Shown: positions 28,469-63,128 of the stretch, in pieces | How the letters are laid out: each line of letters begins with the position of its first letter | How positions within the stretch are numbered: position 1 is the first letter of the stretch | Virus record (IMG/VR): IMGVR_UViG_3300043399_000877 | Coordinates: 124,001-188,000 of that record | Direction: 5' to 3' (one strand) | Length of the DNA stretch: 64,000 bases | Translations under genes and position numbers: made by a program | The notes under the pieces: generated by a model | Database searches by the model: none | The model's input: only the letters and a program-made list of their open reading frames with translations | Told to the model about the DNA's origin: nothing

Positions 28469-28497
28469 AAATGGCAGGGGATTATTCCCCGCCATTT
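28469..28497 (-). terminator. Bulged hairpin at the fibre 1 stop codon
   Basis: AAATGGC-A-GGGGA / TCCCC-GCCATTT; a late-type TTAAATA motif overlaps its end. Confidence 0.5.
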
Positions 28498-40366: not shown

Positions 40367-42919
40367 TTAAAAACTCCTTGCGATTGCAGCACGAGTTGCA
40401 ATCCTGTTAACTGATTGTTCAAAAGGCGGGCCAGTAAGCTCACCGGTGTCAGCATCTATTTTCATACCACCGATAAAGAGAGCCGATCCCTGATCGTCTT
40501 GTCCGCTAGCAATAACTATCCCGTTGTTTAATTCTAGAATGCTTTCTTCGATAGTTGCAAAATTTCTTGCAGGCGGTATTTTGGTAAGTGCGACACCTGC
40601 CATGATGCCGGTCCAAGTGTGTCCTATTGCAGTAATAGTTGACGGCTCTGAAACCAATGTTGGATCTAATACTGTTTGTGTTAACGCGGAAACCAAAGCA
40701 GTTACAATAGTATCAGCTGCACTACCAACACCGGCTAATGCGTTTACTTGGTCTCGTAAATATTCCCAACTATAAATAAAAGCCCCTAAAAGACTTTGAT
40801 TTTCTAAATTAAGATAACGTAACACTGACCTTGCTATAGCGCGACTGTTTGCGGTTATTGTTGTAAAACTAGTCCTAAATTCAGCATCCGGCCAACTTGT
40901 GCTGGGTGAAACTTTAATCGGAGGTTCACCGTCAGTAGCTATTGTGTTTATAATATTATCCATTCTAGCTTGCGCAAACGCTGCTGCCGCACTACTACCA
41001 GCAGTACCGCTGGTATCTTGAGACCCGGTATTTCCACTACTTTTTGTTATAGATATTCCTTGAAGAATGTCACCTAGTATATTTTTTAGTCTTTGAAATG
41101 CAGCAATTGTTGGGAATTTTTCATCTGTACCAAATTGCCCTGTGGTTCCCACATAATAAGCCATAGCAGCATTATATGTTTCCAAATTGCCACCATAAGT
41201 AAGATCGTATCTTAATGCGTCAATAATGAATCCAACGTCTCTGCGACATGCTGCACTGTTATAAGTAAAACTACTACTAAACGGGCTTATGTTTCCGGCC
41301 ACTTGCACCGCAATCCATGCATCTATTTCATCTTGAATAAATGTCTTATTTGCAAGCAACAGCCGTCTAGCATTAAAATAGCCAGTATCGTATCCTGTGG
41401 GATCAGTTAAAACAAATGCGTTTGCGTTTGCTTCTCCGTTGGTTATAATGTCTATAATTTCATCAAAAAGCGCATTTGCGCGAGTAAGCGAGGTACCACT
41501 TAAATAGCTACCAAATACTGATTTTTGCTCAGCTAGTGCTAATAGTGTGTTTGCTTTTTGGTTTGTTAACACTTCGCTAGCATTTGCACGATAGTATGCT
41601 AATGCACTTTTTATACTTCTAAAATTGCTGTTGAATAGCAGATCATAAACTACTGCTTCATTGATGAGCAATGTATCCCTAAAACATTTGTCATAGTCGT
41701 AATTGGCTGCTGTAAAAGTTCTGTTTCCCTGTGTATCAAAAAATCCCCGTGCAAAATCCAACATGGGTTTTTCATTTGCAGTGCTTAGTGTCCAACTTAA
41801 TGCTTGTAGGAACAATCCTGCATCGCGTTCGGTAGTTGCTTCATAGTCAGCTGGCCAATTGGTAGTAAAACCTTGGGAGTCTAGTTCAGATATCAAATTA
41901 GAAATTATAGTAGTTTTTGCTGCATCAATAGCGGTGCTGGCCGCAGATTGTGCTGTAAGAGTAATGGCCACTTCTGTTGGGTTTACTAGATTTCGGGTAC
42001 CACTAGAAACCATTGTATAGTCGCCAAACTGTGTTGAACAACTTGATAATATTATTTGTCCACCGCCTAATGCATAAAAATGTCTATGACACCACATGCT
42101 TACAGCATTAACAGCATTGATTAGTGCGCCATTTTTAGCACAATAACCAATTCCGTTATGTGTCACAGGCGTTGCGCCCCAGGTCATTATGTTGGGGAAT
42201 ATACTATCAGGATCGAGAACACTTGCATCGGCCAGTACTACTCCAGCGCCGCGGCCTACCAATGGGTTAGCGTTTTCACGATCTAATGGTGGGGCTATGC
42301 TGGTCCAGTATGGTGGTGTTCTAACTACAATTTTGTGAACGTATGGTACTCGGGTAATTCTGGCGCCGGGACGAAAACAAATCGCGAATCCTTCAGTTGG
42401 ATTATCCATGTCATCAAGGCGCCAACCTTCAAAAACAGGTCCTTCAACAAAACAACCAGAACCCAATCTAAAAACATTGCGTTCTTCGTATCCAACTTCT
42501 GGTCTTATAAAAACTGTCCGGTGTGCTGCTCTTATTACTGTGTTATCTGGAACATCCAAATGACCTTGTGTTATGTATACGCCCGGACCTATATCAATAA
42601 GAGTTAATGCTTCTCTTGCAACTGCGACTTCAAGAGCTTTTTCTATAGTTGCAAATGCGCTGCTCCAAGTATCACCACTGTTGCGATCGTTACCGGCTTT
42701 TTGAACATATAGAGTGTTCTCAATAGGAACACTTCCGGATATTTCAACAATATCTTCGTAAGTTACATTTTGCTGTAATGCTTGATCAAAATATTCTTGA
42801 TATTGTTTTAGGAACATTTTGCCATCATAGGTATTGATGGCTATTTCACCCAAATCGAGTTGTTGAATGGTAGGCACCTTGTCAGGTACCGAACTGCGAC
42901 GTAATTTAATCGTTGACAT
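40367..42919 (-). CDS. Large putative virion protein: Mtd-N-like start, beta-helix-like domain, phycobiliprotein-like helical repeats
   Basis: MSTIKLRRS..VP...LGEIAINTYDGK; LYVQKAGNDRNSG...AFATIEKAL...GPGVY; KCFRD and ACRRD repeats; C-terminus paralogous to 58215-63128. Confidence 0.8.
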   Translation of the reverse strand: MSTIKLRRSSVPDKVPTIQQLDLGEIAINTYDGKMFLKQYQEYFDQALQQNVTYEDIVEISGSVPIENTLYVQKAGNDRNSGDTWSSAFATIEKALEVAVAREALTLIDIGPGVYITQGHLDVPDNTVIRAAHRTVFIRPEVGYEERNVFRLGSGCFVEGPVFEGWRLDDMDNPTEGFAICFRPGARITRVPYVHKIVVRTPPYWTSIAPPLDRENANPLVGRGAGVVLADASVLDPDSIFPNIMTWGATPVTHNGIGYCAKNGALINAVNAVSMWCHRHFYALGGGQIILSSCSTQFGDYTMVSSGTRNLVNPTEVAITLTAQSAASTAIDAAKTTIISNLISELDSQGFTTNWPADYEATTERDAGLFLQALSWTLSTANEKPMLDFARGFFDTQGNRTFTAANYDYDKCFRDTLLINEAVVYDLLFNSNFRSIKSALAYYRANASEVLTNQKANTLLALAEQKSVFGSYLSGTSLTRANALFDEIIDIITNGEANANAFVLTDPTGYDTGYFNARRLLLANKTFIQDEIDAWIAVQVAGNISPFSSSFTYNSAACRRDVGFIIDALRYDLTYGGNLETYNAAMAYYVGTTGQFGTDEKFPTIAAFQRLKNILGDILQGISITKSSGNTGSQDTSGTAGSSAAAAFAQARMDNIINTIATDGEPPIKVSPSTSWPDAEFRTSFTTITANSRAIARSVLRYLNLENQSLLGAFIYSWEYLRDQVNALAGVGSAADTIVTALVSALTQTVLDPTLVSEPSTITAIGHTWTGIMAGVALTKIPPARNFATIEESILELNNGIVIASGQDDQGSALFIGGMKIDADTGELTGPPFEQSVNRIATRAAIARSF

Positions 42920-42956
42920 ATGCAACCCTTCTAATTTTGCTGACTATATAGTCAAG

Positions 42957-45741: not shown

Positions 45742-46479
45742 TTATTCAGGATAACTTGCGATTTCCCTAATTATCCGTTTTCTTGCAAAAAAATTGTTTT
45801 TTATTTCAGATTCGTTTCTTATATAAGATTTTGGAATTAAAAAAATTCCATCATAACGAGACATTTCACCATTTCCAAAAACATGCGGATAGTCAAATGC
45901 GCGTTCGTTTGGTATAAAATCAAACATAAATCCGTCGGCTACGGCGACATTATCTGGAACAGTCCAAAACATTTCAGTTGAGCTTAACGCATAGGCTTGT
46001 TCAACTGTATCAACCGCCGTTGCATGTGGATGAGACTCCAAAAGTTTTTTATAATTTTGGTTTTCTGAACTTCCTATAAAAAATAAATCAAATTTTTCTT
46101 TACCATTATATGCATCAAAAAAACCTGCAATATTTGATTTTCTTTTTGTTTCTGTTACTATACCATCCGTGGGAACTAATACGACTTCTCCCCACGACTT
46201 AACGTTTTGAGTTTCTTTAAAAACTACTGGAAATTCGTACGCAACGTTGAGTTCATTAAGTTTTGGCTTAAGCCAGTATGGAAAGAAATCTTGTAATTTT
46301 ATTCCATTTTTTACTAAAATAACAAACTCAGATTTTCCGTAAAACTCAGTTGCTTGACTATAATCTGATGTATCGTCAACGTACTTTACGGGATTCCTAG
46401 TTAGAAAAGAATTTTTTAAAACGTCAAATCCATTATATATTTTTCCATCAAAACGATTAAATTTTTGTACTGTATTCAT
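45742..46479 (-). CDS. Hypothetical protein, possibly a glycosyltransferase-like fragment
   Basis: Start refined to MNTVQKF at 46479 (overlaps upstream gene end); MFWTVPDN...YPHVF...YDGIFLIPK. Confidence 0.6.
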   Translation of the reverse strand: MNTVQKFNRFDGKIYNGFDVLKNSFLTRNPVKYVDDTSDYSQATEFYGKSEFVILVKNGIKLQDFFPYWLKPKLNELNVAYEFPVVFKETQNVKSWGEVVLVPTDGIVTETKRKSNIAGFFDAYNGKEKFDLFFIGSSENQNYKKLLESHPHATAVDTVEQAYALSSTEMFWTVPDNVAVADGFMFDFIPNERAFDYPHVFGNGEMSRYDGIFLIPKSYIRNESEIKNNFFARKRIIREIASYPE

Positions 46480-47077
46480 TTGTATCATCCAAAAGGTATA
46501 TTTTAGTGCCATAGTGTCCAACATTTTTACTAGCATCAACGTCAACATACACTGTAAAATTATTGTTGTTGGCATTCTCACAAAATACTATATCTTCACC
46601 AACTAGAGTTTCAGTGTAATTGTCCCACCGATTGAAAAACCAGGGACAGTTAATAGCTTTAAAAACACTTGTCTTTATTAAAATGCATCCAAAGCCCACA
46701 GCAAAAACCGGATGTAAACCAGATTGTGAACTTAATCTACTGTTAAAATCAGTTTCATTATCAAACGCAACACTACGCTGTGGTCGTCTTCTAGTGCTGT
46801 ATGTACATCCAACTATATCTTTATTATGTTTTTTTAAATTAAAAAATACATCTGATGGGAAATGCATATCGCTATCCAACCAAAGCGTGTATTCTGAGTC
46901 GTCAGCTATTGCTTTTTTGACCAGCTGATTTCTGCTATCAGCAATTGTAGTACCTATAATCATGTTAAGAGAAAAACTTACATTTTTTCTTGTAAGTTCA
47001 GCTGCGAGGTTTGCCAGACATATGGCAAACCCTGCCGGTATATAATCTTTAGTAGGTATACATATTGAAACTTGCAT
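46457..47077 (-). CDS. GT2-like glycosyltransferase
   Basis: ICIPT, IADSRNQLV, TLWLDSDM (DxD), AVGFGCILIK, GEDIVFC. Confidence 0.8.
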   Translation of the reverse strand: MQVSICIPTKDYIPAGFAICLANLAAELTRKNVSFSLNMIIGTTIADSRNQLVKKAIADDSEYTLWLDSDMHFPSDVFFNLKKHNKDIVGCTYSTRRRPQRSVAFDNETDFNSRLSSQSGLHPVFAVGFGCILIKTSVFKAINCPWFFNRWDNYTETLVGEDIVFCENANNNNFTVYVDVDASKNVGHYGTKIYLLDDTNEYSTKI

Positions 47078-47741: not shown

Positions 47742-50700
47742 TTATTTTCCTTCTAGCCGATCTACCTTGGCTTTGAGTTCTTTAACAGCTTCAATAAGCA
47801 ACGCAGTTAGTTTTTCGTATTGTACTGTTAAATATTCTTCACCAGTTTTGCTAGTTCCAGTTTCTGGATCTATGTCAAACGGTGCATTTCTTACAGCTTC
47901 CGGTAGTACTTTGAATACTTCCTGTGCTATAACACCGACATCTCGATCTTTTCTTGGAACAAAGTCAAGTGTTTCGGCTTTTTTATGGTCCCAATCAAAA
48001 GTTACACCGCGCAGTGATGTTATTTTATCAAGAGCATTGTCAATGGTAGTTATATTGGTTTTAAGTCTTTCATCCGAACTATAAGCAGTAATTTCACCAA
48101 CTGCACTAAAGTTTCCGGTTGCACCAAACGTTGCTGCAATAGTACCAGCAGTTGTTACGTTAAACGAACCAACAGCACTTGAGAATATACCGGTATCAAC
48201 ATCACGGACTGCGAGTGCTGGTGCCGCCGCTGTTCCGGATCCCTGCAAGTATGTTCTACCAGAAGCAATCCACAATGCCCAGGAATTGGTTATAGTTGTA
48301 GGCAGGACAGCTACAGGTGCTGCATCGATTTTAACGTTTGCAGCAGTGGTTATTGTCATAGTATTAGTGCTAGTAAATGTTGGAGTACGGAATGTAGCGT
48401 GATTTCGTTGGGAAACTGTGCCACCGGCAGCCGTAGTAGTATCAGTAAACGTGCTGTTTGCCACGTTTAGTCTGACACCAGTTGCTGTATTAGTTACACC
48501 ACTGATATTTCCAGTCATATTAACTTGATCAGTAAATGCCACAGTACCGTCAGTTGCCACAGTCATAGGAATTAGCGTACCGGCACTGTCTACTTTAAAT
48601 ACTCTGAGCGTGTTAGTTGGGTCAACATCTATGTTCCAGGTGTTGTTAGTTTGTCCAGTTATTGTGTCCGCTGCACTATTTCCGTAACCAAGAACCAGTT
48701 GTCCACCGTCAGATGATGCAGCTGACCCACCACGTACAACCAGTTGTCCAGTGCCTATTATAACACCAGCCGCAAGTATAGTATTTGCGCCCGGCGGGGT
48801 TGTACCTACGCCCAAGCCGTCCGAACTACCAAACCCAGCGGTTCCACCAACTTGTAAACCACCGCTGAAGAAGTTGGAATTTTCATTTGAAACGTATATA
48901 CCCCAGCGAGACTTCCATTCCCCCTCATACACACCATAATACAAATACCCTTCCCCAGCGTTACCGGGTGCAACTATGTCGCTATCAAGTCTTGTATAAT
49001 CGCCAAATGTAGTTGACAATGTTCCACCGTCAACTTCTATCCAATTATAATTTATATATGACGTTCCAACACTTCCTGCGTCAACATTTATCTTATTGTA
49101 TGTTGAATACAGCGATGTAGTAGTTGATCCGCTTCTTGTATTTTGGCCTATGTTTTGCGATCCAATTACACTTGCTATTGTTCCGGTACCACGGTTAGTT
49201 GCCTCGTTATATCCGCCAATAAAGGTTGTACCAGCTACTGCAACGTCATTTGCGTTACCGGCAAATATTCTGTTGTATCCAGAAAATCCGCTAAGTGTAT
49301 AACTTGTAATTCCGTCGGCACCTAATAGACTTCCTTCAGTTATTGTCACATCGTTTACGATACCGTAATGAATACGGCTTGCCGAAAGAACACCGTCAGT
49401 TGTACTAACTGATGTTACCAAAGATCTTAATGATGTTGTATTAGATGATCCAGATATACTTGCATTTATAATATAATTTGTTGCCGGAAGACTATCTTTA
49501 AGACCAATGTTGCCAACTATATTTGTGTTTCCGTTTGCATCAAAGTATGCAGCCTGTGAACCACCAGTTGTTATCCCGAGTTGGTTAGTACCACTCAGAT
49601 ACATACCTGTAGAAGTATCACCTATAAAACTATATGACGGCGAGGCATTAGTCCCGCTAGATAGTCTTAATTGACCGCTTGTTGTGTTAAATCCAAGCTT
49701 TGTACTTGCCGCCAAGGCTGTTGAATCTACACCGGTGGCTGCAACAAATACTGGGAAACGTAGTCCACCGCTTGTCTCGTCAGTGGCCAATATTGTATCG
49801 CTTGGACCAGCCGTTCCGCCACTACCAGTGTATCCACGTACCCCTTGAATACCTTGACTTCCAGTGTAACCGCGGCTGCCGGTAAATCCAACCCCAGTTA
49901 TACCCTGTATACCTTGTGGACCCACAATGCCTTGAATACCTTGGCTTCCAGTGTAACCGCGGCTGCCGGTAAATCCAGCACCAGATGGTCCTTGGACCCC
50001 TTGGCTACCGGTAAATCCAGTATTTCCTTGATTTCCTTGAATTCCTTGACTACCGGTAAATCCACGACTTCCGGTGAATCCAACACCAGACGATCCTTGA
50101 ATGCCCTGGCTACCGGTAAATCCAGTATTTCCTTGAAATCCCTGAATGCCCTGACTACCAGTAAATCCACGACTTCCGGTAAATCCAGTATCACCAAGGC
50201 CGTCTGTACCTTTTATACCCTGGATACCTTGCATGCCCTGGCTACCGGTAAATCCACGACTTCCGGTAAATCCAGTGTCACCAAATCCGTTACTGCCTTG
50301 AGTACCCTGCGGTCCTTGGCGTCCTTGTATACCTTGACTTCCAGTATATCCACTGCTTCCGGTAAATCCAGTGTCACCAAATCCGTTACTGCCTTGGATA
50401 CCTTGAATACCTTGGCGTCCTTGTATACCTTGGATACCCTGACTTCCAGTAAATCCAGTTAAACCAGCACCATCTTGACCTCGTATACCTTGAATACCTT
50501 GGATACCTTGAATACCTTGGCTACCAGTAAATCCAGTTAAACCAGCACCATCTTGACCTCGTATACCTTGAATACCTTGGATGCCTTGAATACCTTGGCT
50601 ACCAGTAAATCCACGGGTTCCTGTGCCGCTTATACCCTGAATTCCTTGTAGACCTTGAATACCTTGGCTACCGGTAAATCCAGTTGAACCAACGCCATCC

Positions 50701-53700
50701 GGTCCTTGTATACCTTGACCGCCTTGAACGCCTTGTACACCTTGGCTTCCGGTAAATCCACGGATGCTTGCACCGCTTATACCTTGAATACCCTGAATAC
50801 CTTGACTTCCGGTAAATCCGGCACCACGAATACCTTGAATACCTTGAATACCTTGAATACCTTGTGGGCCTTTTATTTGGCCTACGTTATTCCATTGTGT
50901 TCCATCGTAAACCCAAAAATTACCTGTTGCGTCATCTATGACACCGTTTCCGGGTTCAGCTGGATTGCTTATGGTATTGAAATAATAATTCAAATACAGC
51001 GATGGTTGATTTGGTCCGCCTGCCGGGAATACTGCATTTACGTCAGCTGCTGATCCGATTATTAAAAGTGCTGGACCGTAGGTTCCTTGTAGACCTTGAA
51101 CGCCTTGGCTACCGGTAAATCCAGTAGACCCAACAATGCCTTGTATACCTTGACGACCTTGAATACCCTGAATTCCCTGGCTACCAGTAAATCCAGTTCC
51201 TCCAGATTGACCACTGATTCCTTGTAGACCTTGAACGCCTTGACTACCGGTAAATCCATTTTGACCTTGTTGGCCTTGAATACCTTGGCTACCGGTAAAT
51301 CCTCGGCTACCAACAACACCAACGCCATCGGTTCCTCGGATACCTTGAATGCCCTGGGCGCCTTGGCTACCAGTAAATCCAGTTCCTCCAGATTGACCAC
51401 TAATGCCCTGAACACCTTGAATTCCCTGGCTACCGGTAAATCCAATAGGTCCCTGTGAACCTTGAATACCCTGACTTCCGGTAAATCCTCTAGCACCAAC
51501 GGTACCATCTATACCTTGTATACCTTGCAGGCCCTGGTTGCCTTGTACACCTTGGCTACCGGTAAATCCTCGGCCACCAACAGTACCACTAATACCCTGA
51601 ATTCCCTGGAGTCCAGTGGATCCCTGGATACCTTGGCTACCGGTAAATCCTCGGCCACCAACAGTACCACTAATACCCTGAATTCCCTGGAGTCCTTGAA
51701 CGCCTTGGATACCTTGGCTACCAGTAAATCCTCTAGCACCAACAGTACCGTCTATACCTTGTATACCTTGAAGTCCAGTAGATCCCTGGATACCTTGGCT
51801 ACCAGTAAATCCTCTAGCACCAACGGTACCGTCTATACCTTGTATACCTTGCAGGCCCTGAACGCCCTGACTTCCGGTAAATCCTCTAGCACCAATGTTA
51901 CCATCTATACCCTGGATACCTTGAAGGCCCTGGACGCCTTGACTTCCGGTAAACCCACGAGCTCCAGTTAAACCTGTTTCACCCTGGGAACCTTGGACAC
52001 CTTGTCGCCCCTGGATACCTTGAATACCTTGGCTACCGGTAAATCCAGTAGTTCCATTTAATCCAGATATACCCTGAATACCCTGTATACCAATACTTCC
52101 AGTAAATCCGCGGCTACCAACAAAACCTGAATTACCAAGAGATCCTTGAATACCTTGGATACCCTGGCTACCGGTAAAACCAATTACCCCACGAATGCCT
52201 TGAATTCCCTGTGGTCCTTGGATACCCTGAATTCCCTGCGGTCCTTTTATTTGACCTACGTTGTTCCATATGCTGCCATCAAATACCCAAAGATCACCAG
52301 TAGACTGATCTATTACCCCGTTTCCAGTAACTCTGGATGGGAATGTGTCGTTTAAGAAATTATTGGGATTTCCGGTAATATTTACATTTTCAACAGAGCC
52401 TATTACAGTGAGTGATGGTCCGTATGTTCCCTGTACACCCTGTATACCTTGGGATCCTTGGATACCTTGAATGCCCTGACTTCCGGTATATCCAAAAGCA
52501 CCAGCACCACCTTGTATACCTTGAGTACCTTGACTTCCGGTAAAACCTATCGGTCCCTGGCTACCGGTGTATCCTAGGCCACCTATTGGACCACTTATAC
52601 CTTGGATACCTTGGATACCTTGGCTACCAGTATATCCGCGACTACCAACAAAACCAGTATTACCTATTTCACCAGTTAGACCCTGGACCCCTTGAATACC
52701 CTGACTACCGGTAAATCCTGTTAAACCACGAACACCTTGAATACCTTGACTACCGGTAAATCCAACGCTTCCGGTAAATCCGCGTATACCTTGGACACCC
52801 TGACTACCGGTAAATCCAACGCTACCTACGTAACCTAAATCTCCACGATCACCTTTGGTTCCTTGTGGACCTTGAATACCTTGCGCGCCGACAAATCCGC
52901 TAATACCCTGAACACCTTGGATACCTTGGATACCATCAACGCCTTGTATTCCTTGAATACCCTGTGGTCCTATGCTACCAGTATATCCACGACTACCCAC
53001 AAATCCGTCAATGCCCTGGAGTCCTTGCACCCCTTGGAATCCCATAGGTCCTTGAATACCCTGGGCACCTTGTAAACCTTGAACCCCCTGACTACCGGTA
53101 AAACCTGTAGATCCACTTATACCTTGTAAACCTTGTAGGCCTTGTGGTCCAATTGTTCCTTGAACTCCATCTTGACCTGCAAGACCTTGCTGACCGGTTG
53201 TTCCTTGAGCCCCAACAGTTCCCTGAAGACCGTTAGCACCTTGTAGACCCTGTTGTCCCACTGTGCCCTGAGCACCGGTTGTTCCTTGTGCGCCGTTGGC
53301 TCCTTGGACACCCCGGCTTCCGGTAAATCCAGTTATACCTGTAGTACCCTGAGCACCATTGGATCCTTGAATACCCTGTGGGCCTTGTGGTCCAACTATC
53401 TGACCCACGTTTTCCCATGAGCTTCCATTGTATACCCAAAAATCGCCAGTAGCAGAATCTATTACACCATTTCCAGCTACTGCTGCTGGAAAATAATAAT
53501 TAAGCAGGCCTTGTGGGTCGTTTGGTCCACCTGTCGGATAAACAGCATTAACATTGGCTACTGAACCTTCGATAGTTAACGCGGGTCCATAGGTACCTTG
53601 AAGACCTTGAGTACCTTGGCTGCCAGTATAACCCATACTACCAATGAATCCAGTTTGACCGACAATTCCTTGGGGTCCTTGAATGCCTTGAATGCCTTGC

Positions 53701-54077
53701 AATCCCTGTGGACCTTGTGGGCCTTGCAAGCCCTGATACCCTTGCAAACCTTGTGTTCCTTGGGAACCCTGCAGACCCTGTGGGCCTTGAATTCCCTGCA
53801 GACCTTGCTCACCGGTAGCACCTTGTATACCTTGACTTCCCTGAGCACCTTGTAGGCCGCGCTGCCCTTGAATACCCTGAATACCTTGAGGACCCTGGAG
53901 TCCCGGAGTCCAATAGCGTCGTCCGTCAGTATCACCAGTTAGGTAATACCCGTTATCCTCTGGTAAGCCAAGATTTGGTTCAGCCTCACCGGGACGCATG
54001 AACTCATATCGCTTATCACTTATTTCACCAGGCGGTATAGTCTTTACTTTTTTAGATATAGGATATTTGTCACTCAT
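47742..54077 (-). CDS. Giant segmented collagen-like tail fibre (fibre 2) with C-terminal S74 chaperone
   Basis: 2111 aa; Gly-X-Y blocks separated by three homologous globular domains; C-terminal GEITAYSSDERLKTNI...YEKLTALLIEAVKEL. Confidence 0.9.
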   Translation of the reverse strand: MSDKYPISKKVKTIPPGEISDKRYEFMRPGEAEPNLGLPEDNGYYLTGDTDGRRYWTPGLQGPQGIQGIQGQRGLQGAQGSQGIQGATGEQGLQGIQGPQGLQGSQGTQGLQGYQGLQGPQGPQGLQGIQGIQGPQGIVGQTGFIGSMGYTGSQGTQGLQGTYGPALTIEGSVANVNAVYPTGGPNDPQGLLNYYFPAAVAGNGVIDSATGDFWVYNGSSWENVGQIVGPQGPQGIQGSNGAQGTTGITGFTGSRGVQGANGAQGTTGAQGTVGQQGLQGANGLQGTVGAQGTTGQQGLAGQDGVQGTIGPQGLQGLQGISGSTGFTGSQGVQGLQGAQGIQGPMGFQGVQGLQGIDGFVGSRGYTGSIGPQGIQGIQGVDGIQGIQGVQGISGFVGAQGIQGPQGTKGDRGDLGYVGSVGFTGSQGVQGIRGFTGSVGFTGSQGIQGVRGLTGFTGSQGIQGVQGLTGEIGNTGFVGSRGYTGSQGIQGIQGISGPIGGLGYTGSQGPIGFTGSQGTQGIQGGAGAFGYTGSQGIQGIQGSQGIQGVQGTYGPSLTVIGSVENVNITGNPNNFLNDTFPSRVTGNGVIDQSTGDLWVFDGSIWNNVGQIKGPQGIQGIQGPQGIQGIRGVIGFTGSQGIQGIQGSLGNSGFVGSRGFTGSIGIQGIQGISGLNGTTGFTGSQGIQGIQGRQGVQGSQGETGLTGARGFTGSQGVQGLQGIQGIDGNIGARGFTGSQGVQGLQGIQGIDGTVGARGFTGSQGIQGSTGLQGIQGIDGTVGARGFTGSQGIQGVQGLQGIQGISGTVGGRGFTGSQGIQGSTGLQGIQGISGTVGGRGFTGSQGVQGNQGLQGIQGIDGTVGARGFTGSQGIQGSQGPIGFTGSQGIQGVQGISGQSGGTGFTGSQGAQGIQGIRGTDGVGVVGSRGFTGSQGIQGQQGQNGFTGSQGVQGLQGISGQSGGTGFTGSQGIQGIQGRQGIQGIVGSTGFTGSQGVQGLQGTYGPALLIIGSAADVNAVFPAGGPNQPSLYLNYYFNTISNPAEPGNGVIDDATGNFWVYDGTQWNNVGQIKGPQGIQGIQGIQGIRGAGFTGSQGIQGIQGISGASIRGFTGSQGVQGVQGGQGIQGPDGVGSTGFTGSQGIQGLQGIQGISGTGTRGFTGSQGIQGIQGIQGIRGQDGAGLTGFTGSQGIQGIQGIQGIRGQDGAGLTGFTGSQGIQGIQGRQGIQGIQGSNGFGDTGFTGSSGYTGSQGIQGRQGPQGTQGSNGFGDTGFTGSRGFTGSQGMQGIQGIKGTDGLGDTGFTGSRGFTGSQGIQGFQGNTGFTGSQGIQGSSGVGFTGSRGFTGSQGIQGNQGNTGFTGSQGVQGPSGAGFTGSRGYTGSQGIQGIVGPQGIQGITGVGFTGSRGYTGSQGIQGVRGYTGSGGTAGPSDTILATDETSGGLRFPVFVAATGVDSTALAASTKLGFNTTSGQLRLSSGTNASPSYSFIGDTSTGMYLSGTNQLGITTGGSQAAYFDANGNTNIVGNIGLKDSLPATNYIINASISGSSNTTSLRSLVTSVSTTDGVLSASRIHYGIVNDVTITEGSLLGADGITSYTLSGFSGYNRIFAGNANDVAVAGTTFIGGYNEATNRGTGTIASVIGSQNIGQNTRSGSTTTSLYSTYNKINVDAGSVGTSYINYNWIEVDGGTLSTTFGDYTRLDSDIVAPGNAGEGYLYYGVYEGEWKSRWGIYVSNENSNFFSGGLQVGGTAGFGSSDGLGVGTTPPGANTILAAGVIIGTGQLVVRGGSAASSDGGQLVLGYGNSAADTITGQTNNTWNIDVDPTNTLRVFKVDSAGTLIPMTVATDGTVAFTDQVNMTGNISGVTNTATGVRLNVANSTFTDTTTAAGGTVSQRNHATFRTPTFTSTNTMTITTAANVKIDAAPVAVLPTTITNSWALWIASGRTYLQGSGTAAAPALAVRDVDTGIFSSAVGSFNVTTAGTIAATFGATGNFSAVGEITAYSSDERLKTNITTIDNALDKITSLRGVTFDWDHKKAETLDFVPRKDRDVGVIAQEVFKVLPEAVRNAPFDIDPETGTSKTGEEYLTVQYEKLTALLIEAVKELKAKVDRLEGK

Positions 54078-54127: not shown

Positions 54128-54916
54128 TTAAAACCCCAAGTGTTTACTTCTCACAAAGTTTAAATCCCAGGTAGTATATGAAATAGGAATTGCAGAACCA
54201 GAGAAGGGTTCTGGATTTGGGTTAACTAAACGCCATCCTTCTCCCCATTTTTTAGTAAGATACTCAATATTCATGTTATTTGCTATATCAAGCCTAGGTT
54301 TCAAGTCTGGTTCACTTTTTTCAGTTTGACTTCCATGTTCATAATATTGATTTTTATCTGCAGGACCGTGCAAATAAGATGCATTTGTGCCAATCCATCT
54401 TTTTATAGGACGATAATGAAATCTCATCAAATAATCTGCGTCTTCACAATATGCAGGATATGTATTTTCGTCAAATAATCCAAATTCAGAAACTATAATA
54501 TCACGAATCATAAACAAATCCCAAGCACCTATATTAAAATCTCCGGGATTTGGGTGGATCATTCCAATATAAGGATCTGACTCAGCTATTTCCACCATCT
54601 CTTTTAACAACCCTGGTCCAAATGCGACATCATCATTTACTATGATCCAGTAAGGTGCATTCATATAACATTTGATTATTAAATTCCAGGCGCCAGCACA
54701 TCCTATGTTGGCTGGCATATGGACAACTTTAATTTTATCAATATAGCGATGTGTTATTTTTGTTAAAGCATTTAATTCTTCGTCGATTTCTCCACGACCG
54801 TTGTTGTTTATAATAACAAAGTTTTCTACTGGATAATCAACACTCATAATTAATCTTGTTACCCAGAACGGATTTGACACTATTGCAGCACCAATAACTG
54901 GAATTTTATTCATCAA
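54128..54916 (-). CDS. GT2-like glycosyltransferase
   Basis: VIINNNG, NIGCAGAWN, IVNDDV (DxD-like), FGLFDEN.YPAYCEDADY. Confidence 0.8.
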   Translation of the reverse strand: MMNKIPVIGAAIVSNPFWVTRLIMSVDYPVENFVIINNNGRGEIDEELNALTKITHRYIDKIKVVHMPANIGCAGAWNLIIKCYMNAPYWIIVNDDVAFGPGLLKEMVEIAESDPYIGMIHPNPGDFNIGAWDLFMIRDIIVSEFGLFDENTYPAYCEDADYLMRFHYRPIKRWIGTNASYLHGPADKNQYYEHGSQTEKSEPDLKPRLDIANNMNIEYLTKKWGEGWRLVNPNPEPFSGSAIPISYTTWDLNFVRSKHLGF

Positions 54917-56748
54917 CGATCTCCGAGCATATAACTTTCAGCTTTTTTAATTTTGTTGTTAACTGTTTTTATTTTTTCTATAACAGATTTTTTTATCAAA
55001 GACGGATTTACGTACCAATCTTCGTATGCGCGATATTCGTCAGGTGCTATATTGTCAACAACCAATTCATATCCCTTGCTTTTTAAGTATTCACGAGATA
55101 GTTCTCTAATTTTACTATTCTTATCCGTGTATGCGTCATGTTCAAAAGTTATAACACCGAACGAATATTCATCAAATGGTATACTTAAAAGAACGTTATA
55201 TGAAACTTCTGGAGGATCACAATCTATTTGTAGGTAATCTATATTTTTCTTGAATTTGTGATTTTTTAGCAGAGTCTTATAATCGACTTCAGTTGCATCT
55301 GCATGTACACAAGGATTTAACCGACTAGTCGAATATGCATTTGCAAAATCTAGATTTAAGTCTATCGATACACCAGTCCATCCAAAACTATTTTCTAGCA
55401 AGTAAGTATTATTACCGTATTGTGGATTTCCAGCACCTATCTCAAGATAAGTTCCAAATTGCTTTCCATCATGGGCAGCTAACACAAACATATCTTGATA
55501 TGACTCAGAATAGTTTTTTTCTATATTTTCTGAATTTTTAAATTTAAAATTTAGTTTTGCATGTTTTTTTGCTGTATAACTTTCAATTTTCTTAGTTACA
55601 AACGCATTTAAATAATTTAAATTATTATAAGTCAACGTAGTAAATTGCTCGTTCATTTCATAGTTAACATAAAGATCTAAAAATATATTTTTAGATTCTT
55701 CTTGAAGTCCGCACCACCAGGCAGTGTGTGCCTTTTGGAACAACAATGCATACTTTCCCGGAAAATCCACAGTTGATCTCAATGGTTCTAGGTTGTCAAA
55801 TTCACAAACATCAACAGCAATTGATGCAGTTGTATAAGAATCAAACCAACGGCCATCGGTGTTGTGCTGGCTTTCATAAAACAAACTCAAGTAAAAATAA
55901 GCTTCGGGCCGTTTCGGAAGTAGTGCAACTGCGTGTTGTAAAAATCCTTTTACAGTAAATTTTCTAGTACCCTGAGATTCAAAACACCTTGCACATTGAA
56001 TAAGGCATTCGTATTGTAGGAGTTTATTTTCAGTTCTTTCAGCTGTTCTAATGTAATATGAAACTGCGCTTGCTGTTTGTCCTATATTATGATAATATCG
56101 CGCAAGCAAGTAATTATTTTCAGGATCATTTGGACTTAAAACATAATTTTTTATAAGATTTTCCACCTTAATTCCAGTTAACCAATTATAAAAACTCTGG
56201 ACAGAAATTAGATTTAACCATTCATTTCTGTTTTTATCAAAGTTTTCGTAAGTTATTTCGAGATCTGTTTTTAAGAGTTCTTGATTTCCACTAGTAATAA
56301 CGCTGCAACCATAATCAGTATCTACTGTAAAAATTTCAAGATCATTTCTTGTTTTTCTAAAATGAACTAATGATTTCCAACAATCACCATTCCAAGTTCC
56401 CCCAGTAAACGGTATTACTTGGTGCTCTTCTTTTGCTGGATTCATGTCATGGCAAATTATAAATCCTCCTGGATTAAGAACTGCCAACGAGTTGTCAATA
56501 TCCTTTATAACTTGATCACTATGGTGAAGCCCATCAACAAATATAACATCAAACGTTTCAGTGTTATTTTTAAAAAAATCATCAGATGTTAATGTATGTG
56601 TAGCTAGTGATAAAGGTTCTGGATCTACGCCAATTTTGTACTCACATTGTATTTGAGAAAAATTCGATCCGTCTGAAACTCCAATTTCTAAATACTTTTT
56701 TGCAGAAATTCTTTTGATAATTTCATTTATAATTTTAGTTCTATTCAT
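54913..56748 (-). CDS. Class I SAM methyltransferase + TPR + FkbM-like methyltransferase fusion
   Basis: YLEIGV, FDVIFVDGLH, GGFIICHD; TPR-like YLLARYY..A..YY and PKRPEAYFYL; SESYQD, YLEIGAG, YLQIDCD, VITFEHD. Confidence 0.8.
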   Translation of the reverse strand: MNRTKIINEIIKRISAKKYLEIGVSDGSNFSQIQCEYKIGVDPEPLSLATHTLTSDDFFKNNTETFDVIFVDGLHHSDQVIKDIDNSLAVLNPGGFIICHDMNPAKEEHQVIPFTGGTWNGDCWKSLVHFRKTRNDLEIFTVDTDYGCSVITSGNQELLKTDLEITYENFDKNRNEWLNLISVQSFYNWLTGIKVENLIKNYVLSPNDPENNYLLARYYHNIGQTASAVSYYIRTAERTENKLLQYECLIQCARCFESQGTRKFTVKGFLQHAVALLPKRPEAYFYLSLFYESQHNTDGRWFDSYTTASIAVDVCEFDNLEPLRSTVDFPGKYALLFQKAHTAWWCGLQEESKNIFLDLYVNYEMNEQFTTLTYNNLNYLNAFVTKKIESYTAKKHAKLNFKFKNSENIEKNYSESYQDMFVLAAHDGKQFGTYLEIGAGNPQYGNNTYLLENSFGWTGVSIDLNLDFANAYSTSRLNPCVHADATEVDYKTLLKNHKFKKNIDYLQIDCDPPEVSYNVLLSIPFDEYSFGVITFEHDAYTDKNSKIRELSREYLKSKGYELVVDNIAPDEYRAYEDWYVNPSLIKKSVIEKIKTVNNKIKKAESYMLGDR

Positions 56749-57854: not shown

Positions 57855-58208
57855 TTATTCGTTAGCTGCTTCGTTTAAGCTCATAACAAAATCTACAGAC
57901 TCGTTTGCACTGGCGTATGCATACAACCGGTCACCTTGTTCAAGAACCACTCGTCCTGCTATTGCAGAAAGCACATCTTTTGCAGGAATTTCAATATCAG
58001 GAACAACATAATATTGTGACGGTAGCGGAAGTGTTGGTTTTTCAATTATCACAGTAACACTTACCGTATTACTTGAAAAGTTTGCACAAGTTGCAGAAAG
58101 TATAATTGACGACACCGTTTGTGGTGCAGTGTATATCAACGTTGAACTAGTTGTCAGTTTTTTAGTTATGCTTCTAAATGCGTTTAACGGAATTAAGGGA
58201 GTTACCAT
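57855..58208 (-). CDS. Small beta-rich hypothetical virion protein (paralog of 39899-40363)
   Basis: IYTAP...SIILSATCAN...IPAKD...GRVVLEQGDRLYA. Confidence 0.7.
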   Translation of the reverse strand: MVTPLIPLNAFRSITKKLTTSSTLIYTAPQTVSSIILSATCANFSSNTVSVTVIIEKPTLPLPSQYYVVPDIEIPAKDVLSAIAGRVVLEQGDRLYAYASANESVDFVMSLNEAANE

Positions 58209-58214: not shown

Positions 58215-61200
58215 TTATTCTCCAATTGCAAGTATATATGGTGTTAGAGTTGAGTACAACGATTTTCTGAACACCCGACCTTCGATAATACCCTTGGCAC
58301 GGTTTATCTTGAGCTGTGTACCTATCTTAAAGTCACCGCGCTGGTCAGTTGCTGTAAAGTAAACTCTACCACCATTTGCTTCAACTATTTCGTTACCTTC
58401 TACCGGGGTACCACCCAAATATGGTAGAGCTATGTTGATATCAGTACCAGATCCAATCCATTCAAAAGTATGACTACTTGAAGTTATCAAACTAAGTTGG
58501 TGGAACGAGACTGCTATATTCGGATTAATAACACCTTCACGTATTTCTTCTTCTATAGTTATGAGTGCATTGTAACGATTGTCAAGCAATTCCTCAACTA
58601 CATCAAACAAGTCTTCAAGAATGTTTGCCTCTGTTGATGTAGCTGCTGGTAGCGACGTATCTTGAATTTCAACAGTGTTTAATGCGGTTACTGGACTGTT
58701 TACAACGCAAAGTTTTGCAACATCTTTTACATAATTAAATGTGTCTATGCTTGCAGCAATTTCGTTATTTGGGATCTGTTGCACACCACCGTTAAAGTAT
58801 GATCTTATAGCCACGTTTGTTGCAACATTACCTTGATACAGCATGTCGTATGTAATAGCATCTATTACATAACCCATATCTCTTCTGCAAAGGTCTTCAT
58901 TATACAAATAGTTACCGGATATGTATTCTGTAATTGCTGCTTTCGTAGCATCTTTGTTGGTTTGCATAGTTGCAAACAATGTTACTAAACCGCTGCCGAC
59001 CCAATTTGTAGAAGGATTGATTGTTGAAACTGTGGATTGTGTTTCAACAACACTTATAAGGTTGTCCATTAGTCCTTGAACAGTTAATGATGCGTCAAGT
59101 GAACCCGCAAGTCCAGTTACTTGTGCAACAGTTCCTTGTAGTTCTTCTACATCGAGGTTAACTGCAATTTCACTTAAAATAGTTTTCATATACTTGTATG
59201 CGCCCACGGTTGCCATCTTTTCTGCGGCTGCTACTTGTAGCGTTGATTTTGAATAGTACGCATTTGCTGCTATAACTGTTTCAGTGTTACCACCGTAAGT
59301 CAAGTCATAATATAGTGCGTCTATGATTAAATCAACATCTCGTTCACAAGTTGCTTGGTCATAAACCAGGTTTGGATATCCGCGGTTAATGTACTCAACT
59401 ATTTCAGCTTTTATAAATGCCCGGTTTAGATCAATAAGATTTCTAGCATTTTCATATCCGGAATCATATGCAGTAGGATCCGGAATAATATATGATGGTA
59501 TATTATCGACGCCGTCTCTCAGTATTTCTAGAATAATATTCATATTATCAGTTACTGAATCGACTGCTGTTGGATTTCCAGTCACAGTGTCTATTAAGAT
59601 AGATTTCAAATATCCAAAAGACCCTAGTGTTTGAATTTTTTGATTCTGAGTGACAACAGCAGCGCCATTTCTGTAATAGCTTCTAGCAGCAGTTATGCTA
59701 CGGAAGTTAGAACCAAACATCATGTCATACCCAACAGCATCAACTATCAAGCCAACATCACGCTCACAAAGTCCTACATCATATTCAAAAGTTCCCTCGA
59801 TGTGTTCTATAACTGCTGTTTGGATGTCATTTATGTCAGCTCTAACAAGTGCATTTAGGGTTGTTAATGATGTGTCAACCCACGCAGTGCTTGGATTCAC
59901 TTGTGAAGGTTGTGTTTCAGTGTCTATTATACCTATTATGTTGTCAAGTAATCCCTGTGCAGTGGATGACTCGGGATTTCCTGATGTAAGTGCAGCTATT
60001 AGGGATTTTAAGTATGTTAGTGCGGCCACAGTTGGTGCTTTTTCTGGAAGTGATATTTGCAATTGATTACCGGAGTAGTATGCATTACCAGCTATGGTTG
60101 TTTCAAGATTTCCACCATAAGTCAAATCATAATGCATTGCTTCCAAAATATAGCCCAAGTCGCGCTCACAAGTTGCTTGGTTATAAGACAGTGACGGGTA
60201 GTTTGTGTTTATGTAAGCTATTACCTGTGTTATCAAGCTGGCTCTATTTGTAAATATAGTGTTTCTTACTGATTGCAAGTTCGCATTGTAGCCAGTTGGG
60301 TTAGGCGTTACCGATGCTGGTACTGACGGCAGACCGTTTTCAAGAACATCTATAATTATGTTCATGTTGCTCAACACTGACGCCTCTGCCGAACTTACAC
60401 CGGACACAAAACCGTACATAACGTATTTTAAATAATCTAGTGCGCCAACAGTTGCCTTTTTCTGACTTTGGGTAACAACAGCGGCACCGTTTCTGTAATA
60501 ACTTCTAGCAGCAGTTATGCTACGGAAGTTAGAACCAAACATCATGTCGTACAGTATTGCATCGACAATAATACCCACATCTCTTCTGCAAAGTTCTGCA
60601 TTGTAACTTGCAATCAATGGCAGGTTTTCAACTATGTATGCTGTGCCTTCTTCAATTAAGAATTGGCGGTTTGCTTGAATAATGTCGGCTGCCTTTTTGC
60701 GATTAGCATCAACTCCCACTGGGGTAGCAAAGTCGATCGCTGGGATAGCCAGTTCACCGAACGAAAGTATGTTAATAATCAAATCCATATTTTGTCCGAT
60801 ACTGGCAGCCTGTGTGGTGTTCATGTCTACCAAATCTAGCAGTAGATCTTTTAATTTATACAATGCTGATATGGTTTCAACTGACTGATTATTTCTAACG
60901 TTTATAGCACCAGCTCGCAAGTAACTCGCACCTGCAATTATAGATCTGTAATTGGTTCCAAAAGCCATATCATCTATTACAGCTTCTGCAATCAACCCCA
61001 CATCACGTGAGCATTTCGCTTCATTATACTGGAAGAACGGAAATTCTTTTTCTATATGCTTGATTACTTCAGTTCTCATAAACGGGATTTGTGAAAGCAA
61101 GTATTCACGATCTTCTCTTACTTCAATCGGTTCTTCATCAAAAAACTGTGGTACAATTAACTCATTTTTAATGTTTAATTCACCAACTTCTCTTACAGTA

Positions 61201-63128
61201 TAATAATTTGTATCACCAAAGAACCTGACAGCATCGCCAATATTTGGCTTCTTAATAAGTCTATCCATCACAAACTGGTTGGTTTGCGGTTGAGAAACTA
61301 CTCTACCGTAATAAAGTGGAGTACTTACACCGTCTGCTTTTAGTGCGTAATTACCAAATGTACTGTTGCTGTTCGTTATTGATGTAAATCCACCCTTTTC
61401 GCAAAGGAATGCAACATCACAGCAAATTGTAAACAAGCTCACAAGCTGAGTATTTCCACGGTTAAGCATGTGTATACCAATACCACCTTGGTTATATTGA
61501 GTAAACGCATCACATACCATTGACTTCAAACCATCAGAGTGATTTCCGTCAACTCGCATGCCTGTTCCAGTTGTGGTTAATGATGTACAGTTTTGAACAT
61601 ACGGGCTCTGTGTAATGAATCCAGCGCCGGTTCCGTCATTTGCAAAAGCAACAGCAGCACTTGGTGCAAGATGATCTTTAAAGGTTACTTGTGTTATGTA
61701 AGAACCGTTATATACCCAGAACATATCTTGAGTTCTATTAAGCGGTCTTATAGTCACAGTTCTCAAGCTATCACCGACTAGCGATACCCGCGCTGGAAGT
61801 CGAAGTGGGTTGTCGATCACATATACACCACTTTTAATATAAATTGTAATAGGGTCAAATTCTGATGGTGGCTGTGTTGCTCGAATTAATTGCACAACCT
61901 CGAGGGCTCTGTCAATAGTTTTAAAAGGTTCTGAAAGCGTTGTACCGTCGTTTTCATCGTTACCGCTTTCATCTGAAACGTAATAAACATTGTTTACACG
62001 GTCAGCAATACCGATTTCTCTAACAGTATCTATAGCGTTTTTACTTCGTTTAAAGTATACTTTACCATCGGTATTGTTTACAAAAAGTTCAGCTTTTTCA
62101 AGTGTTGACGCAGGTGGTATGTACCCAATTAAATCGGTATTTTTTAATATTATAATACTATCTTGAATTCTGCCTTGTTCAAAGAGAGTATTTTTAATTC
62201 TACTACCTGGTAGAACTTCTAAGTCACCAGTCACTGCCAATTCAGTTTTTAAATTTGTTATACCACCAACAGCGCCGATGTTGATTACTTGCCCAGCACC
62301 AAATGCGTTTATTGTTGAAGAATTTGTGTTGAAAAGATTTACATTTGGTTTAGTTGTTTCGAGATCAGTTTTAAAGCTAACTTTATCTTCAAAAAATTCA
62401 GTTGTCGTAGTTCCATCTATAGATATTTTAGCATAACTTGATGGATATCCTTCTTCTGTAGAAAAAACTTCAACTCGAGTATTGCCTTCTGGTACTGGCG
62501 CAACTATTTTGTTTTGCCAGTTATACAAGTTATAAGCAGTTACATAATCGATCATACCTCGCACGTTTACAAGTGCGTCATCATCTTTAGGATCGGCTAA
62601 GTTGTTTGGATTTTCGTCGTTAAATTCAATGTATCCAGTTTCTGAATCATAAACGAAAACTTGTTGCTCATAATCGGTTGTATTCTTAACAGTGACAATT
62701 CCGGTACCGGATCCGACTAGATAAAGATCCTGATTGTCATCTGTTAAGATAGCTCTAGTATAAAGCGATGCTAGATCCTGATTTTCGTATGTTAAACTAA
62801 ATGAACCAGTTCTTGTAGAATCTGAAACTGGATCGTACCAAGTTTTGGATTCATCAAAAAGTATTCTTGCTTTGGGTTCTGAACCACGATCTATTAATAC
62901 ACCAGAAACACCAAGGGTTACGCCGGCACCGGTTTCGCCCTTGTTAATTACTATAACATTGTCGGTGATATCTAAATCTTGTGACTCAACACTGGTTGTC
63001 GTACCGTAAACAACCATGTTACCTTTAACGTATACTGTACCAGTATTGTCAGTATCTAGAGTAATATTACCCCCTGGATTAACTATTAACTGGTAGTCAT
63101 CTACGCCGTATAGATCAATTTTAGACAT
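58215..63128 (-). CDS. Very large putative virion protein: beta-helix-like domain with six tandem phycobiliprotein-like helical repeats
   Basis: 1637 aa; VYYVSDESGNDENDG..FKTIDRAL...SGVY...SLVGDSLRTVTIRP; six CxRD repeats; C-terminal SSSHTFEWIGSG...TDQRGDFKIG. Confidence 0.85.
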   Translation of the reverse strand: MSKIDLYGVDDYQLIVNPGGNITLDTDNTGTVYVKGNMVVYGTTTSVESQDLDITDNVIVINKGETGAGVTLGVSGVLIDRGSEPKARILFDESKTWYDPVSDSTRTGSFSLTYENQDLASLYTRAILTDDNQDLYLVGSGTGIVTVKNTTDYEQQVFVYDSETGYIEFNDENPNNLADPKDDDALVNVRGMIDYVTAYNLYNWQNKIVAPVPEGNTRVEVFSTEEGYPSSYAKISIDGTTTTEFFEDKVSFKTDLETTKPNVNLFNTNSSTINAFGAGQVINIGAVGGITNLKTELAVTGDLEVLPGSRIKNTLFEQGRIQDSIIILKNTDLIGYIPPASTLEKAELFVNNTDGKVYFKRSKNAIDTVREIGIADRVNNVYYVSDESGNDENDGTTLSEPFKTIDRALEVVQLIRATQPPSEFDPITIYIKSGVYVIDNPLRLPARVSLVGDSLRTVTIRPLNRTQDMFWVYNGSYITQVTFKDHLAPSAAVAFANDGTGAGFITQSPYVQNCTSLTTTGTGMRVDGNHSDGLKSMVCDAFTQYNQGGIGIHMLNRGNTQLVSLFTICCDVAFLCEKGGFTSITNSNSTFGNYALKADGVSTPLYYGRVVSQPQTNQFVMDRLIKKPNIGDAVRFFGDTNYYTVREVGELNIKNELIVPQFFDEEPIEVREDREYLLSQIPFMRTEVIKHIEKEFPFFQYNEAKCSRDVGLIAEAVIDDMAFGTNYRSIIAGASYLRAGAINVRNNQSVETISALYKLKDLLLDLVDMNTTQAASIGQNMDLIINILSFGELAIPAIDFATPVGVDANRKKAADIIQANRQFLIEEGTAYIVENLPLIASYNAELCRRDVGIIVDAILYDMMFGSNFRSITAARSYYRNGAAVVTQSQKKATVGALDYLKYVMYGFVSGVSSAEASVLSNMNIIIDVLENGLPSVPASVTPNPTGYNANLQSVRNTIFTNRASLITQVIAYINTNYPSLSYNQATCERDLGYILEAMHYDLTYGGNLETTIAGNAYYSGNQLQISLPEKAPTVAALTYLKSLIAALTSGNPESSTAQGLLDNIIGIIDTETQPSQVNPSTAWVDTSLTTLNALVRADINDIQTAVIEHIEGTFEYDVGLCERDVGLIVDAVGYDMMFGSNFRSITAARSYYRNGAAVVTQNQKIQTLGSFGYLKSILIDTVTGNPTAVDSVTDNMNIILEILRDGVDNIPSYIIPDPTAYDSGYENARNLIDLNRAFIKAEIVEYINRGYPNLVYDQATCERDVDLIIDALYYDLTYGGNTETVIAANAYYSKSTLQVAAAEKMATVGAYKYMKTILSEIAVNLDVEELQGTVAQVTGLAGSLDASLTVQGLMDNLISVVETQSTVSTINPSTNWVGSGLVTLFATMQTNKDATKAAITEYISGNYLYNEDLCRRDMGYVIDAITYDMLYQGNVATNVAIRSYFNGGVQQIPNNEIAASIDTFNYVKDVAKLCVVNSPVTALNTVEIQDTSLPAATSTEANILEDLFDVVEELLDNRYNALITIEEEIREGVINPNIAVSFHQLSLITSSSHTFEWIGSGTDINIALPYLGGTPVEGNEIVEANGGRVYFTATDQRGDFKIGTQLKINRAKGIIEGRVFRKSLYSTLTPYILAIGE

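Follow-up and report, generated by a model that had tools for sequence, protein, structure and literature searches.

Phycobiliproteins (PBPs) are regarded as a family found only in the antennae with which cyanobacteria, red algae and cryptophytes harvest light. Their classical bilin attachment sites are Cys84 and an insertion near position 150 (PMC2327270; PMC6614406); Cys153 of the beta subunits is served by T-type lyases (PMC10452541), and the core-membrane linker ApcE attaches its bilin autocatalytically, without a lyase (PMC2327270). T4-like cyanophages carry bilin synthesis genes, the role of which, like that of cpeT, has been called a mystery or unresolved (PMC3037559); the T- or S-type lyases of these phages have a role likewise called unresolved (PMC3037559; PMC10665884), and an S-type lyase is encoded even by cluster C cyanophages, which have neither psbA nor hli (PMC10665884). 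Adsorption of the cyanophages S-PM2, P-HM1 and P-HM2 is light-dependent, independent of host photosynthesis and unexplained (PMC6628666). Here we describe a gene in a stretch of 64,000 nucleotides, referred to as the window (positions 124,001 to 188,000 of the IMG/VR virus record IMGVR_UViG_3300043399_000877). This intact open reading frame (ORF), 58215..63128 on the minus strand, encodes a protein of 1,637 amino acids (aa) with six repeats that, judged from sequence and structure prediction, are very probably divergent members of the PBP branch of the globin fold. Such repeats would form a large PBP sister branch in phage virion proteins in which the chromophore-attachment residues are kept. 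No published description of PBP-like domains in phage proteins was found in a search that lay outside subscription journals.

Fold and homology of the repeats

A hidden Markov model (HMM) built from the six copies delimits six helical repeats of 125-154 aa each within residues 670-1505, in agreement with the span 58575-61120 given in an original prediction read directly from the DNA letters. The motif C-x-R-D occurs six times in the protein, at residues 706, 847, 987, 1121, 1261 and 1414, against a chance expectation of 0.03 from composition alone, and the Cys codons listed below and the Cys-to-Cys spacings of 141, 140, 134, 140 and 153 aa are exactly those of that prediction. The gene and its HMM-delimited repeats are as follows.

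58215..63128, minus strand: whole gene, with an N-terminal region, a beta-helix, six PBP-like repeats and a conserved C-terminal domain
60708..61121, minus strand: PBP-like repeat 1, aa 670-807, codon of Cys706 at 61013
60285..60701, minus strand: PBP-like repeat 2, aa 810-948, codon of Cys847 at 60590
59874..60278, minus strand: PBP-like repeat 3, aa 951-1085, codon of Cys987 at 60170; the repeat modelled with AlphaFold
59463..59867, minus strand: PBP-like repeat 4, aa 1088-1222, codon of Cys1121 at 59768
58995..59456, minus strand: PBP-like repeat 5, aa 1225-1378, codon of Cys1261 at 59348; its G-H loop is longer
58614..58988, minus strand: PBP-like repeat 6, aa 1381-1505, codon of Cys1414 at 58889; the most divergent, its C-terminal helix aligning poorly

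Profile searches with the repeats point to PBPs and to nothing else, as had been anticipated, the window repeats themselves staying under the threshold of the Pfam phycobilisome family PF00502. This family was matched by 32 of 130 diverse repeats (E <= 1; best E 5e-5), every other Pfam family being matched by at most two, and by 47 of 100 repeats (E <= 1) in a set centred on cyanophage S-PM2. Among PDB sequences the repeat profile found 21 chains at E <= 10, of which 20 are phycocyanin or phycoerythrocyanin, aligned at the Cys84 helix. A type IV pilin (4bhr) was the top PDB sequence match of the deep profile (E 0.003) and was judged spurious; that match is limited to the C-terminal half, which is rich in Ala and Thr, and no structural match backs it.

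For profile-profile comparison, real PBP genes were fetched from metagenomes and 94 non-redundant PBPs were used in hhalign; the allophycocyanin strings quoted in the original prediction also match real allophycocyanin ORFs from metagenomes. Over 116 columns the repeat alignment matched the 94 PBPs with a probability of 96.4% (P 1.4e-9), positions 5-123 of the repeat falling on PBP positions 40-164, and a second, independent repeat set gave the same values (96.4%, P 1.4e-9). Controls with a reversed alignment and 20 column shuffles scored 8-18, with P >= 0.024. When sub-regions of the repeat were aligned separately they stayed collinear, the part before the motif falling on PBP 40-66 (P 0.0045), the motif on PBP 81-103 (P 2e-7) and the part after it on PBP 124-164 (P 7e-4). 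The start of the alignment at PBP residue 40, together with a repeat length of 135-153 aa, agrees with the proposed core of about 140 aa without helices X and Y.

An AlphaFold2 model of repeat 3, made without templates, consists of six helices, with a predicted local distance difference test score (pLDDT) of 97.3 and a predicted template-modelling score of 0.91. In a Foldseek search of the PDB the best nine matches of this model all belong to the PBP family (allophycocyanin core chains, the bilin-binding domain of ApcE and smURFP), with template-modelling (TM) scores of 0.58-0.71, and haemoglobins come next; for the predicted structure this PBP-first ranking is unambiguous. A model of an S-PM2 repeat, its sequence taken from IMG/VR, reached a pLDDT of 97.5, and 49 of its top 50 matches are PBPs, phycoerythrin and phycocyanin beta chains first. 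The string of PBP-fold domains that had been suggested is in this way supported by a globin/PBP fold in the models. Pfam, PDB sequences, profile-profile comparison and structure prediction agree, and on this basis the repeat domain is predicted to be the PBP globin core (helices A/B, E, F, G and H) without the X-Y hairpin.

Consensus residues common to the repeats and PBPs are spread over four helices (N47, P64, Y74, C84, R86, D87, Y97, G102, K137 and D155 in phycocyanin alpha numbering), those outside the motif being located in helices B, E, G and H. In PBPs the X-Y hairpin and Arg93 serve alpha/beta dimerisation, and the loss of both from the repeats fits a domain that no longer builds PBP discs. 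No canonical PBP gene came up when IMG/VR was scanned with a degenerate DNA pattern of the helix-E motif of PBPs, so the repeats are best regarded as a separate lineage.

Several observations weigh against assignment to PBPs. The PF00502 scores of 12.1 bits for the whole protein and 13.2 bits for repeat 3 (E 0.09, aa 27-115 on profile positions 68-152) are under the 22.2-bit gathering threshold, the Foldseek E-values of repeat 3 are modest (0.02-0.1), and the PBP-invariant residues Arg93, Thr96, Gly114 and Glu117 are not kept: Arg93, present in 100% of PBPs, is Asp in 80% of repeats, and Gly114 is Tyr in 96%. An unrelated helical repeat could share a C-x-R-D helix with PBPs by chance or convergence, since globin-like folds can arise in unrelated families, the single-sequence and Pfam scores of the window repeats are not significant alone (E 0.03-0.2) and the Foldseek E-values all exceed 0.01. 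This explanation is disfavoured, and we consider it highly improbable: it does not account for a profile-profile P of 1.4e-9 in two independent repeat sets against P >= 0.02 in shuffles, for the collinear alignment of motif-free flanks, for the residues in helices B, E, G and H that repeats and PBPs have in common (N47, P64, Y74, Y97, G102, K137 and D155), or for the rank of PBPs above all other globins in both Foldseek searches.

The Cys-Arg-Asp site

Over 2,640 repeats the motif positions C37, R39 and D40 are conserved at 0.90, 0.91 and 0.95, all within the five most conserved positions, and they align on PBP Cys84/82, Arg86/84 and Asp87/85; the triad is complete in six of the six window repeats. 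Arg and Asp are both kept in 2,333 of the 2,383 repeats with the Cys and in 63 of the 170 without it (counts that include related sequences), and in 104 of these 170 the Cys is replaced by Tyr, Phe or Trp. As read from these alignments, the fold tolerates loss of the triad, with a bulky aromatic residue filling the Cys position. This joint loss and the aromatic replacement, together with the conservation of the triad, point to residues that serve a ligand site and not to residues that pack the core. Haem as the ligand was ruled out, there being no conserved His in the repeats. A disulfide within the domain was likewise ruled out for the window type, in which each repeat has a single, unpaired Cys.

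In Kyanoviridae, the family of T4-like cyanophages, the repeats lie in giant proteins adjoining baseplate genes, among them the following.

Syn9 gp101: 6,076 aa, annotated 'putative fiber', repeat-bearing
P-HM2 'gp7': 4,454 aa, repeat-bearing
S-PM2 p091 and S-RSM4_214: repeat-bearing giant proteins

Depositors annotated such proteins as virion, tail-fibre or baseplate proteins ('virion structural protein' in the case of Syn9 gp101 and S-PM2 neighbours), and the suggestion in the original prediction that aquatic T4-like phages may have similar, unannotated repeats in their large virion proteins proved right for these giant cyanophage proteins. Of 141 full S-PM2-type repeats, 132 have a second Cys, in the motif S-C-x-D/N-V, which is absent from the six window repeats and from 770 of the 776 repeats of their type. 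The cultured T4-like cyanophages in which repeats with this second Cys were noted are Syn9, P-HM2, S-PM2, S-RSM4, S-RIM2 and B23. In the S-PM2 model this residue caps the last helix (N-cap) after a G-H loop of 26 residues, and its counterpart in a weakly scoring alignment (P 0.012) is beta-Cys153. From sequence and model together, the Kyanoviridae repeats look like phycoerythrin and phycocyanin beta subunits. The lyase cpeT is commonly encoded by T4-like cyanophages; in S-RSM4 cpeT is found upstream of the gene with the repeats, at a distance of about 1 kb.

The best explanation that we can offer for these observations includes bilin attachment to the repeats and is put forward tentatively. 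We propose that the chromophore site of PBPs survives in the repeats, with a Cys homologous to Cys84 followed by the bilin-holding Arg and Asp, and that each repeat would carry a covalently attached linear tetrapyrrole. In the infected cell the bilin would be attached by a lyase, from host or phage, or in an autocatalytic reaction like that of ApcE, and the resulting fibre would bear pigment and could absorb light or respond to it. Bilin attachment, although it falls short of an even chance, is on the sequence evidence the most likely single mechanism, ahead of a pigment-free module and of another ligand or chemistry.

The pigment-free alternative, which we regard as doubtful, is that an ancestral PBP domain was captured and is reused as a stable helical bead of about 140 aa that lengthens fibres, the former pocket being filled by Y67, N57, D51 and T83 and the Cys, Arg and Asp being kept in a buried polar network or in inter-repeat or inter-chain disulfides. 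The number of repeats per protein varies from 4 to 37, as that of a length-setting spacer would, and it is even in 171 proteins and odd in 84, which would permit Cys pairing. Triad-less repeats exist, and beside the site invariant polar phage residues replace small PBP ones, as with the Tyr at Gly114. Cultured relatives of the window phage infect non-photosynthetic hosts, and the part of its genome that was examined holds no bilin genes (see below). A mere spacer leaves unexplained, however, why ancestral ligand residues top the conservation at 15-25% overall identity, why the triad is lost jointly and why the Cys gives way mainly to Tyr, Phe or Trp instead of Ala or Ser; a single free Cys per extracellular domain would be unusual, and both Cys of the two-Cys variants stand at canonical PBP attachment positions, which lie on opposite sides of the PBP subunit (PMC6614406).

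Repeat numbers bear on the history of the arrays as well. The six window repeats share 20-49% identity in pairwise comparison, and the closest pairs are repeats 2 and 4 (48%) and 3 and 5 (49%), which indicates that a two-repeat unit was recently duplicated in the window protein; the excess of even repeat numbers in the family, taken with these pairs, fits duplication of two-repeat units. Two alternating repeat types as an analogue of alpha and beta subunits were considered and rejected, mean identity being independent of the parity of repeat distance.

The phages that carry the repeats and the other genes of the window

A profile search of 1.84 billion representatives found the family in 1,349 clusters (50% identity) at E <= 0.001, in proteins of up to 6,382 aa with up to 37 repeats. 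By tblastn against 50,697 cultured phage records, four window repeats matched 218 records and one P-HM2 repeat matched 349 records at 1,135 places; the records with the repeat are all from Synechococcus or Prochlorococcus phages, bar one named 'Marine', and in the same search the repeat was not found in cultured Rak2-like phages. The nearest predicted viral structures are those of cyanophage tail proteins and of uncultured freshwater phages. In 185,579 cellular genomes scanned with a DNA pattern there were 11 loci, of which ten are on metagenome-derived contigs (eight labelled as metagenome-assembled genome or bin) and one is in an isolate of Kitasatospora; none of the 11 is cyanobacterial, which is uninformative on the host.

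By its marker genes the window phage itself does not belong to the classical T4-like cyanophages and is a Rak2/PA5oct-like jumbo phage. Its major capsid protein shares 72% identity with its counterparts in Sinorhizobium phage Phosso and Vibrio phage 2.275.O and 69% with those of Rak2-like phages, and its terminase (TerL) is 56% identical to that of the Pseudomonas PA5oct group. The window spans both ends of the 381,620-bp contig Ga0485233_000002 (window position 913 is contig position 344101, and window position 58215 is contig position 19771), and this crossing of the contig ends indicates that the genome is complete and either circular or terminally redundant. Two assemblies are of near-equal size, 381,620 and 381,886 bp. 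A related IMG/VR contig has an identical layout of the repeat gene, after portal, protease and gp23. Two further stretches of 10 kb of the contig hold replication genes only, and no transfer RNA genes were found in the sequence examined.

The site may instead be functional with something other than a phycobilin, such as biliverdin from the haem oxygenase of a heterotrophic host, a bound metal ion, or a covalent link through a reactive Cys to another virion protein or to the receptor. Coupled conservation and loss of Cys, Arg and Asp indicate a site and not the identity of its ligand; smURFP with biliverdin (6fzn_B) is among the top structural matches, extra invariant acidic and polar residues (D46, D51 and N57) lie outside the PBP bilin site, and the one-Cys jumbo-phage lineage has no known cyanobacterial host. 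We nevertheless consider this alternative unlikely. The window type has neither a conserved His nor a second Cys for a usual metal site, the homologous site binds bilin in every characterised relative (PMC2327270), and the cultured phages with the domain all infect bilin-producing hosts.

Bilin attachment, the mechanism that we tentatively prefer, has its own difficulties. Capsid protein and terminase place the window phage among jumbo phages that infect Proteobacteria, and its host may be a heterotroph. The search for ho1, pcyA, pebS/pebAB and lyase genes that had been suggested as a check extended over about 95 kb of the 382-kb genome and found none, nor did this part yield any gene for a haem oxygenase, a bilin reductase, a lyase or photosynthesis. 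The phage-specific invariant residues D51, N57, Y67 and T83 could occupy the pocket in place of a bilin, and lyases may fail to recognise so divergent a substrate. In Syn9 gp101 (aa 4392-4957) three repeats keep Cys and Asp and have lost the Arg (C-x-D/T-D), and the triad statistics count related sequences rather than independent events. No report of pigmented or fluorescent phage particles was found in the literature searched.

Both S-PM2 and P-HM2, two of the phages with light-dependent adsorption, carry the repeats. A broader possibility, speculative and in our view improbable in its entirety, is that particles of cyanophages and of this jumbo lineage carry covalently bound bilins on PBP-like arrays in their fibre and baseplate proteins, that these pigments are the light sensor in the adsorption of S-PM2 and P-HM1/P-HM2, and that phage ho1/pcyA/pebS and cpeT/cpcV at least partly serve to chromophorylate the phage's own virion proteins. 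If so, a T-type lyase would act on the beta-153-like Cys, and an S-type lyase or autocatalysis would serve the Cys84-like Cys. Two puzzles become testable in this light, namely the adsorption of S-PM2, P-HM1 and P-HM2 only in the light and the presence of bilin synthesis or lyase genes even in phages of Prochlorococcus, which lacks phycobilisomes, or in phages without psbA and hli. The original prediction had also considered that the domains mimic or bind phycobilisomes, which is unlikely because a virion fibre meets the cell surface and not the thylakoid. Should the repeats prove pigment-free, they would still be a clear case of a host photosynthetic fold turned into a fibre building block, and would offer a compact, lyase-independent PBP core as a possible scaffold for fluorescent tags.

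The 1,637-aa protein matches the PHROG tail-fibre families 5342 (E 1.5e-101), 4527 and 17885. Its gene lies directly downstream of those for portal, prohead protease and gp23, and its neighbours in the window encode portal, protease, gp23, sheath, tube and collagen-like fibres. The family match and the location in a virion gene module both assign the product, as a prediction, to the fibre- or baseplate-type virion proteins. The other parts of the gene, the adjoining gene and a second repeat gene are as follows.

61239..61991, minus strand: region of a pectate-lyase-like right-handed beta-helix, aa about 380-630; Pfam PF12708 at E 0.002, under the family cut-off
58221..58562, minus strand: aa 1523-1636, conserved domain at the C-terminus; similar to the C-terminal ends of PHROG 17885 and 3442 and present in many fibre families
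57855..58208, minus strand: 117-aa ORF, partner gene, immediately downstream; 28% identity (E 3e-13) to the 117-aa gp323 of phage B23; PHROG 1276
40367..42925, minus strand: second repeat protein, 852 aa, of PHROG tail-fibre families, with two full PBP-like repeats and one degenerate

The beta-helix part is 40% identical over 300 aa to gp322 of Synechococcus phage B23, and the C-terminal domain shows strong conservation with the C-terminus of the same protein. The 117-aa ORF has the same position as gp323 in B23 and may encode a fibre partner or chaperone. In the 852-aa protein the full repeats span aa 395-680 (window 40886-41743), both with C-x-R-D (HMM domain E 1e-29 and 3.5e-43), and the degenerate repeat, aa 326-403, has Thr in place of Cys; the window phage is thus predicted to have at least two proteins built with the PBP-like module.

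Two collagen-like fibre genes on the minus strand, 28482-37385 (2,967 aa) and 47742-54077 (2,111 aa), have a GC content of 0.45-0.52 against 0.33-0.40 around them, and an antisense ORF at 32097-35207 on the plus strand is a by-product of the Gly-X-Y repeat. Sugar-modifying genes stand amid the structural genes at window positions 913-4090, 24448-28440, 46457-47077 and 54128-56748; the set includes cytidylyltransferase/mannose-phosphate isomerase, pyruvyl transferase, GT25, GT2, an Anp1-like gene, methyltransferases and a glycosyltransferase-methyltransferase fusion of 1,330 aa, and its location suggests that the virion fibres are glycosylated. An ORF for a TnsA-like endonuclease, probably of the homing or mobile kind, is located between the genes for terminase and tail tube (13729-14172, minus strand).

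Comparison with known systems

The repeats share with the alpha and beta subunits of allophycocyanin, phycocyanin and phycoerythrin (PF00502) the globin-type core from helices A/B to H and, at the start of helix E, a Cys84-type Cys followed by Arg and Asp; the cyanophage variants share with the beta subunits a long G-H loop with a second Cys. They differ in the absence of the X-Y hairpin and the change of Arg93 to Asp, and an alpha/beta dimer or disc is not expected of them. PBPs are free subunits of 160-170 aa, whereas the phage domains are 6-37 tandem copies in one virion-protein chain, at 15-24% identity to PBPs, under the Pfam threshold and with D51, N57, Y67 and T83 as invariants of their own. 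PBPs carry a bilin chromophore, which in the repeats is putative.

The phycobilisome component ApcE likewise holds a PBP-type domain inside a very large multidomain polypeptide, and this domain is among the best structural matches (4xxk_A, TM 0.67, root-mean-square deviation 3.0; 7vea_aM, TM 0.71). ApcE has one such domain followed by linker (REP) repeats and is cytoplasmic, whereas in the phage proteins the PBP domain itself is the repeat. It attaches its bilin through a Cys at a position other than the Cys84-type one, which is the canonical position occupied in the phage repeats. By analogy, its lyase-free attachment would be a precedent for self-sufficient chromophorylation.

The repeat family is the same in the giant gp7 or 'putative fibre' proteins of cyanophages (Syn9 gp101, P-HM2 gp7, S-PM2 p091, S-RSM4_214 and B23 gp322). 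The likeness to B23 gp322/gp323 extends to a collinear order of beta-helix, repeats, C-terminal domain and downstream 117-aa gene. The repeats of the T4-like giant proteins have two invariant Cys and those of the window type one, and the T4-like genes lie between gp6 and gp8/gp10, whereas the window gene follows a jumbo head module.

Finally, smURFP, an engineered allophycocyanin alpha that self-ligates biliverdin, is a structural match to the repeat (6fzn_B, TM 0.65). It differs in being a laboratory-evolved single domain that forms a homodimer, and it demonstrates that neither a lyase nor a partner subunit is needed for covalent attachment of a bilin to a PBP core.

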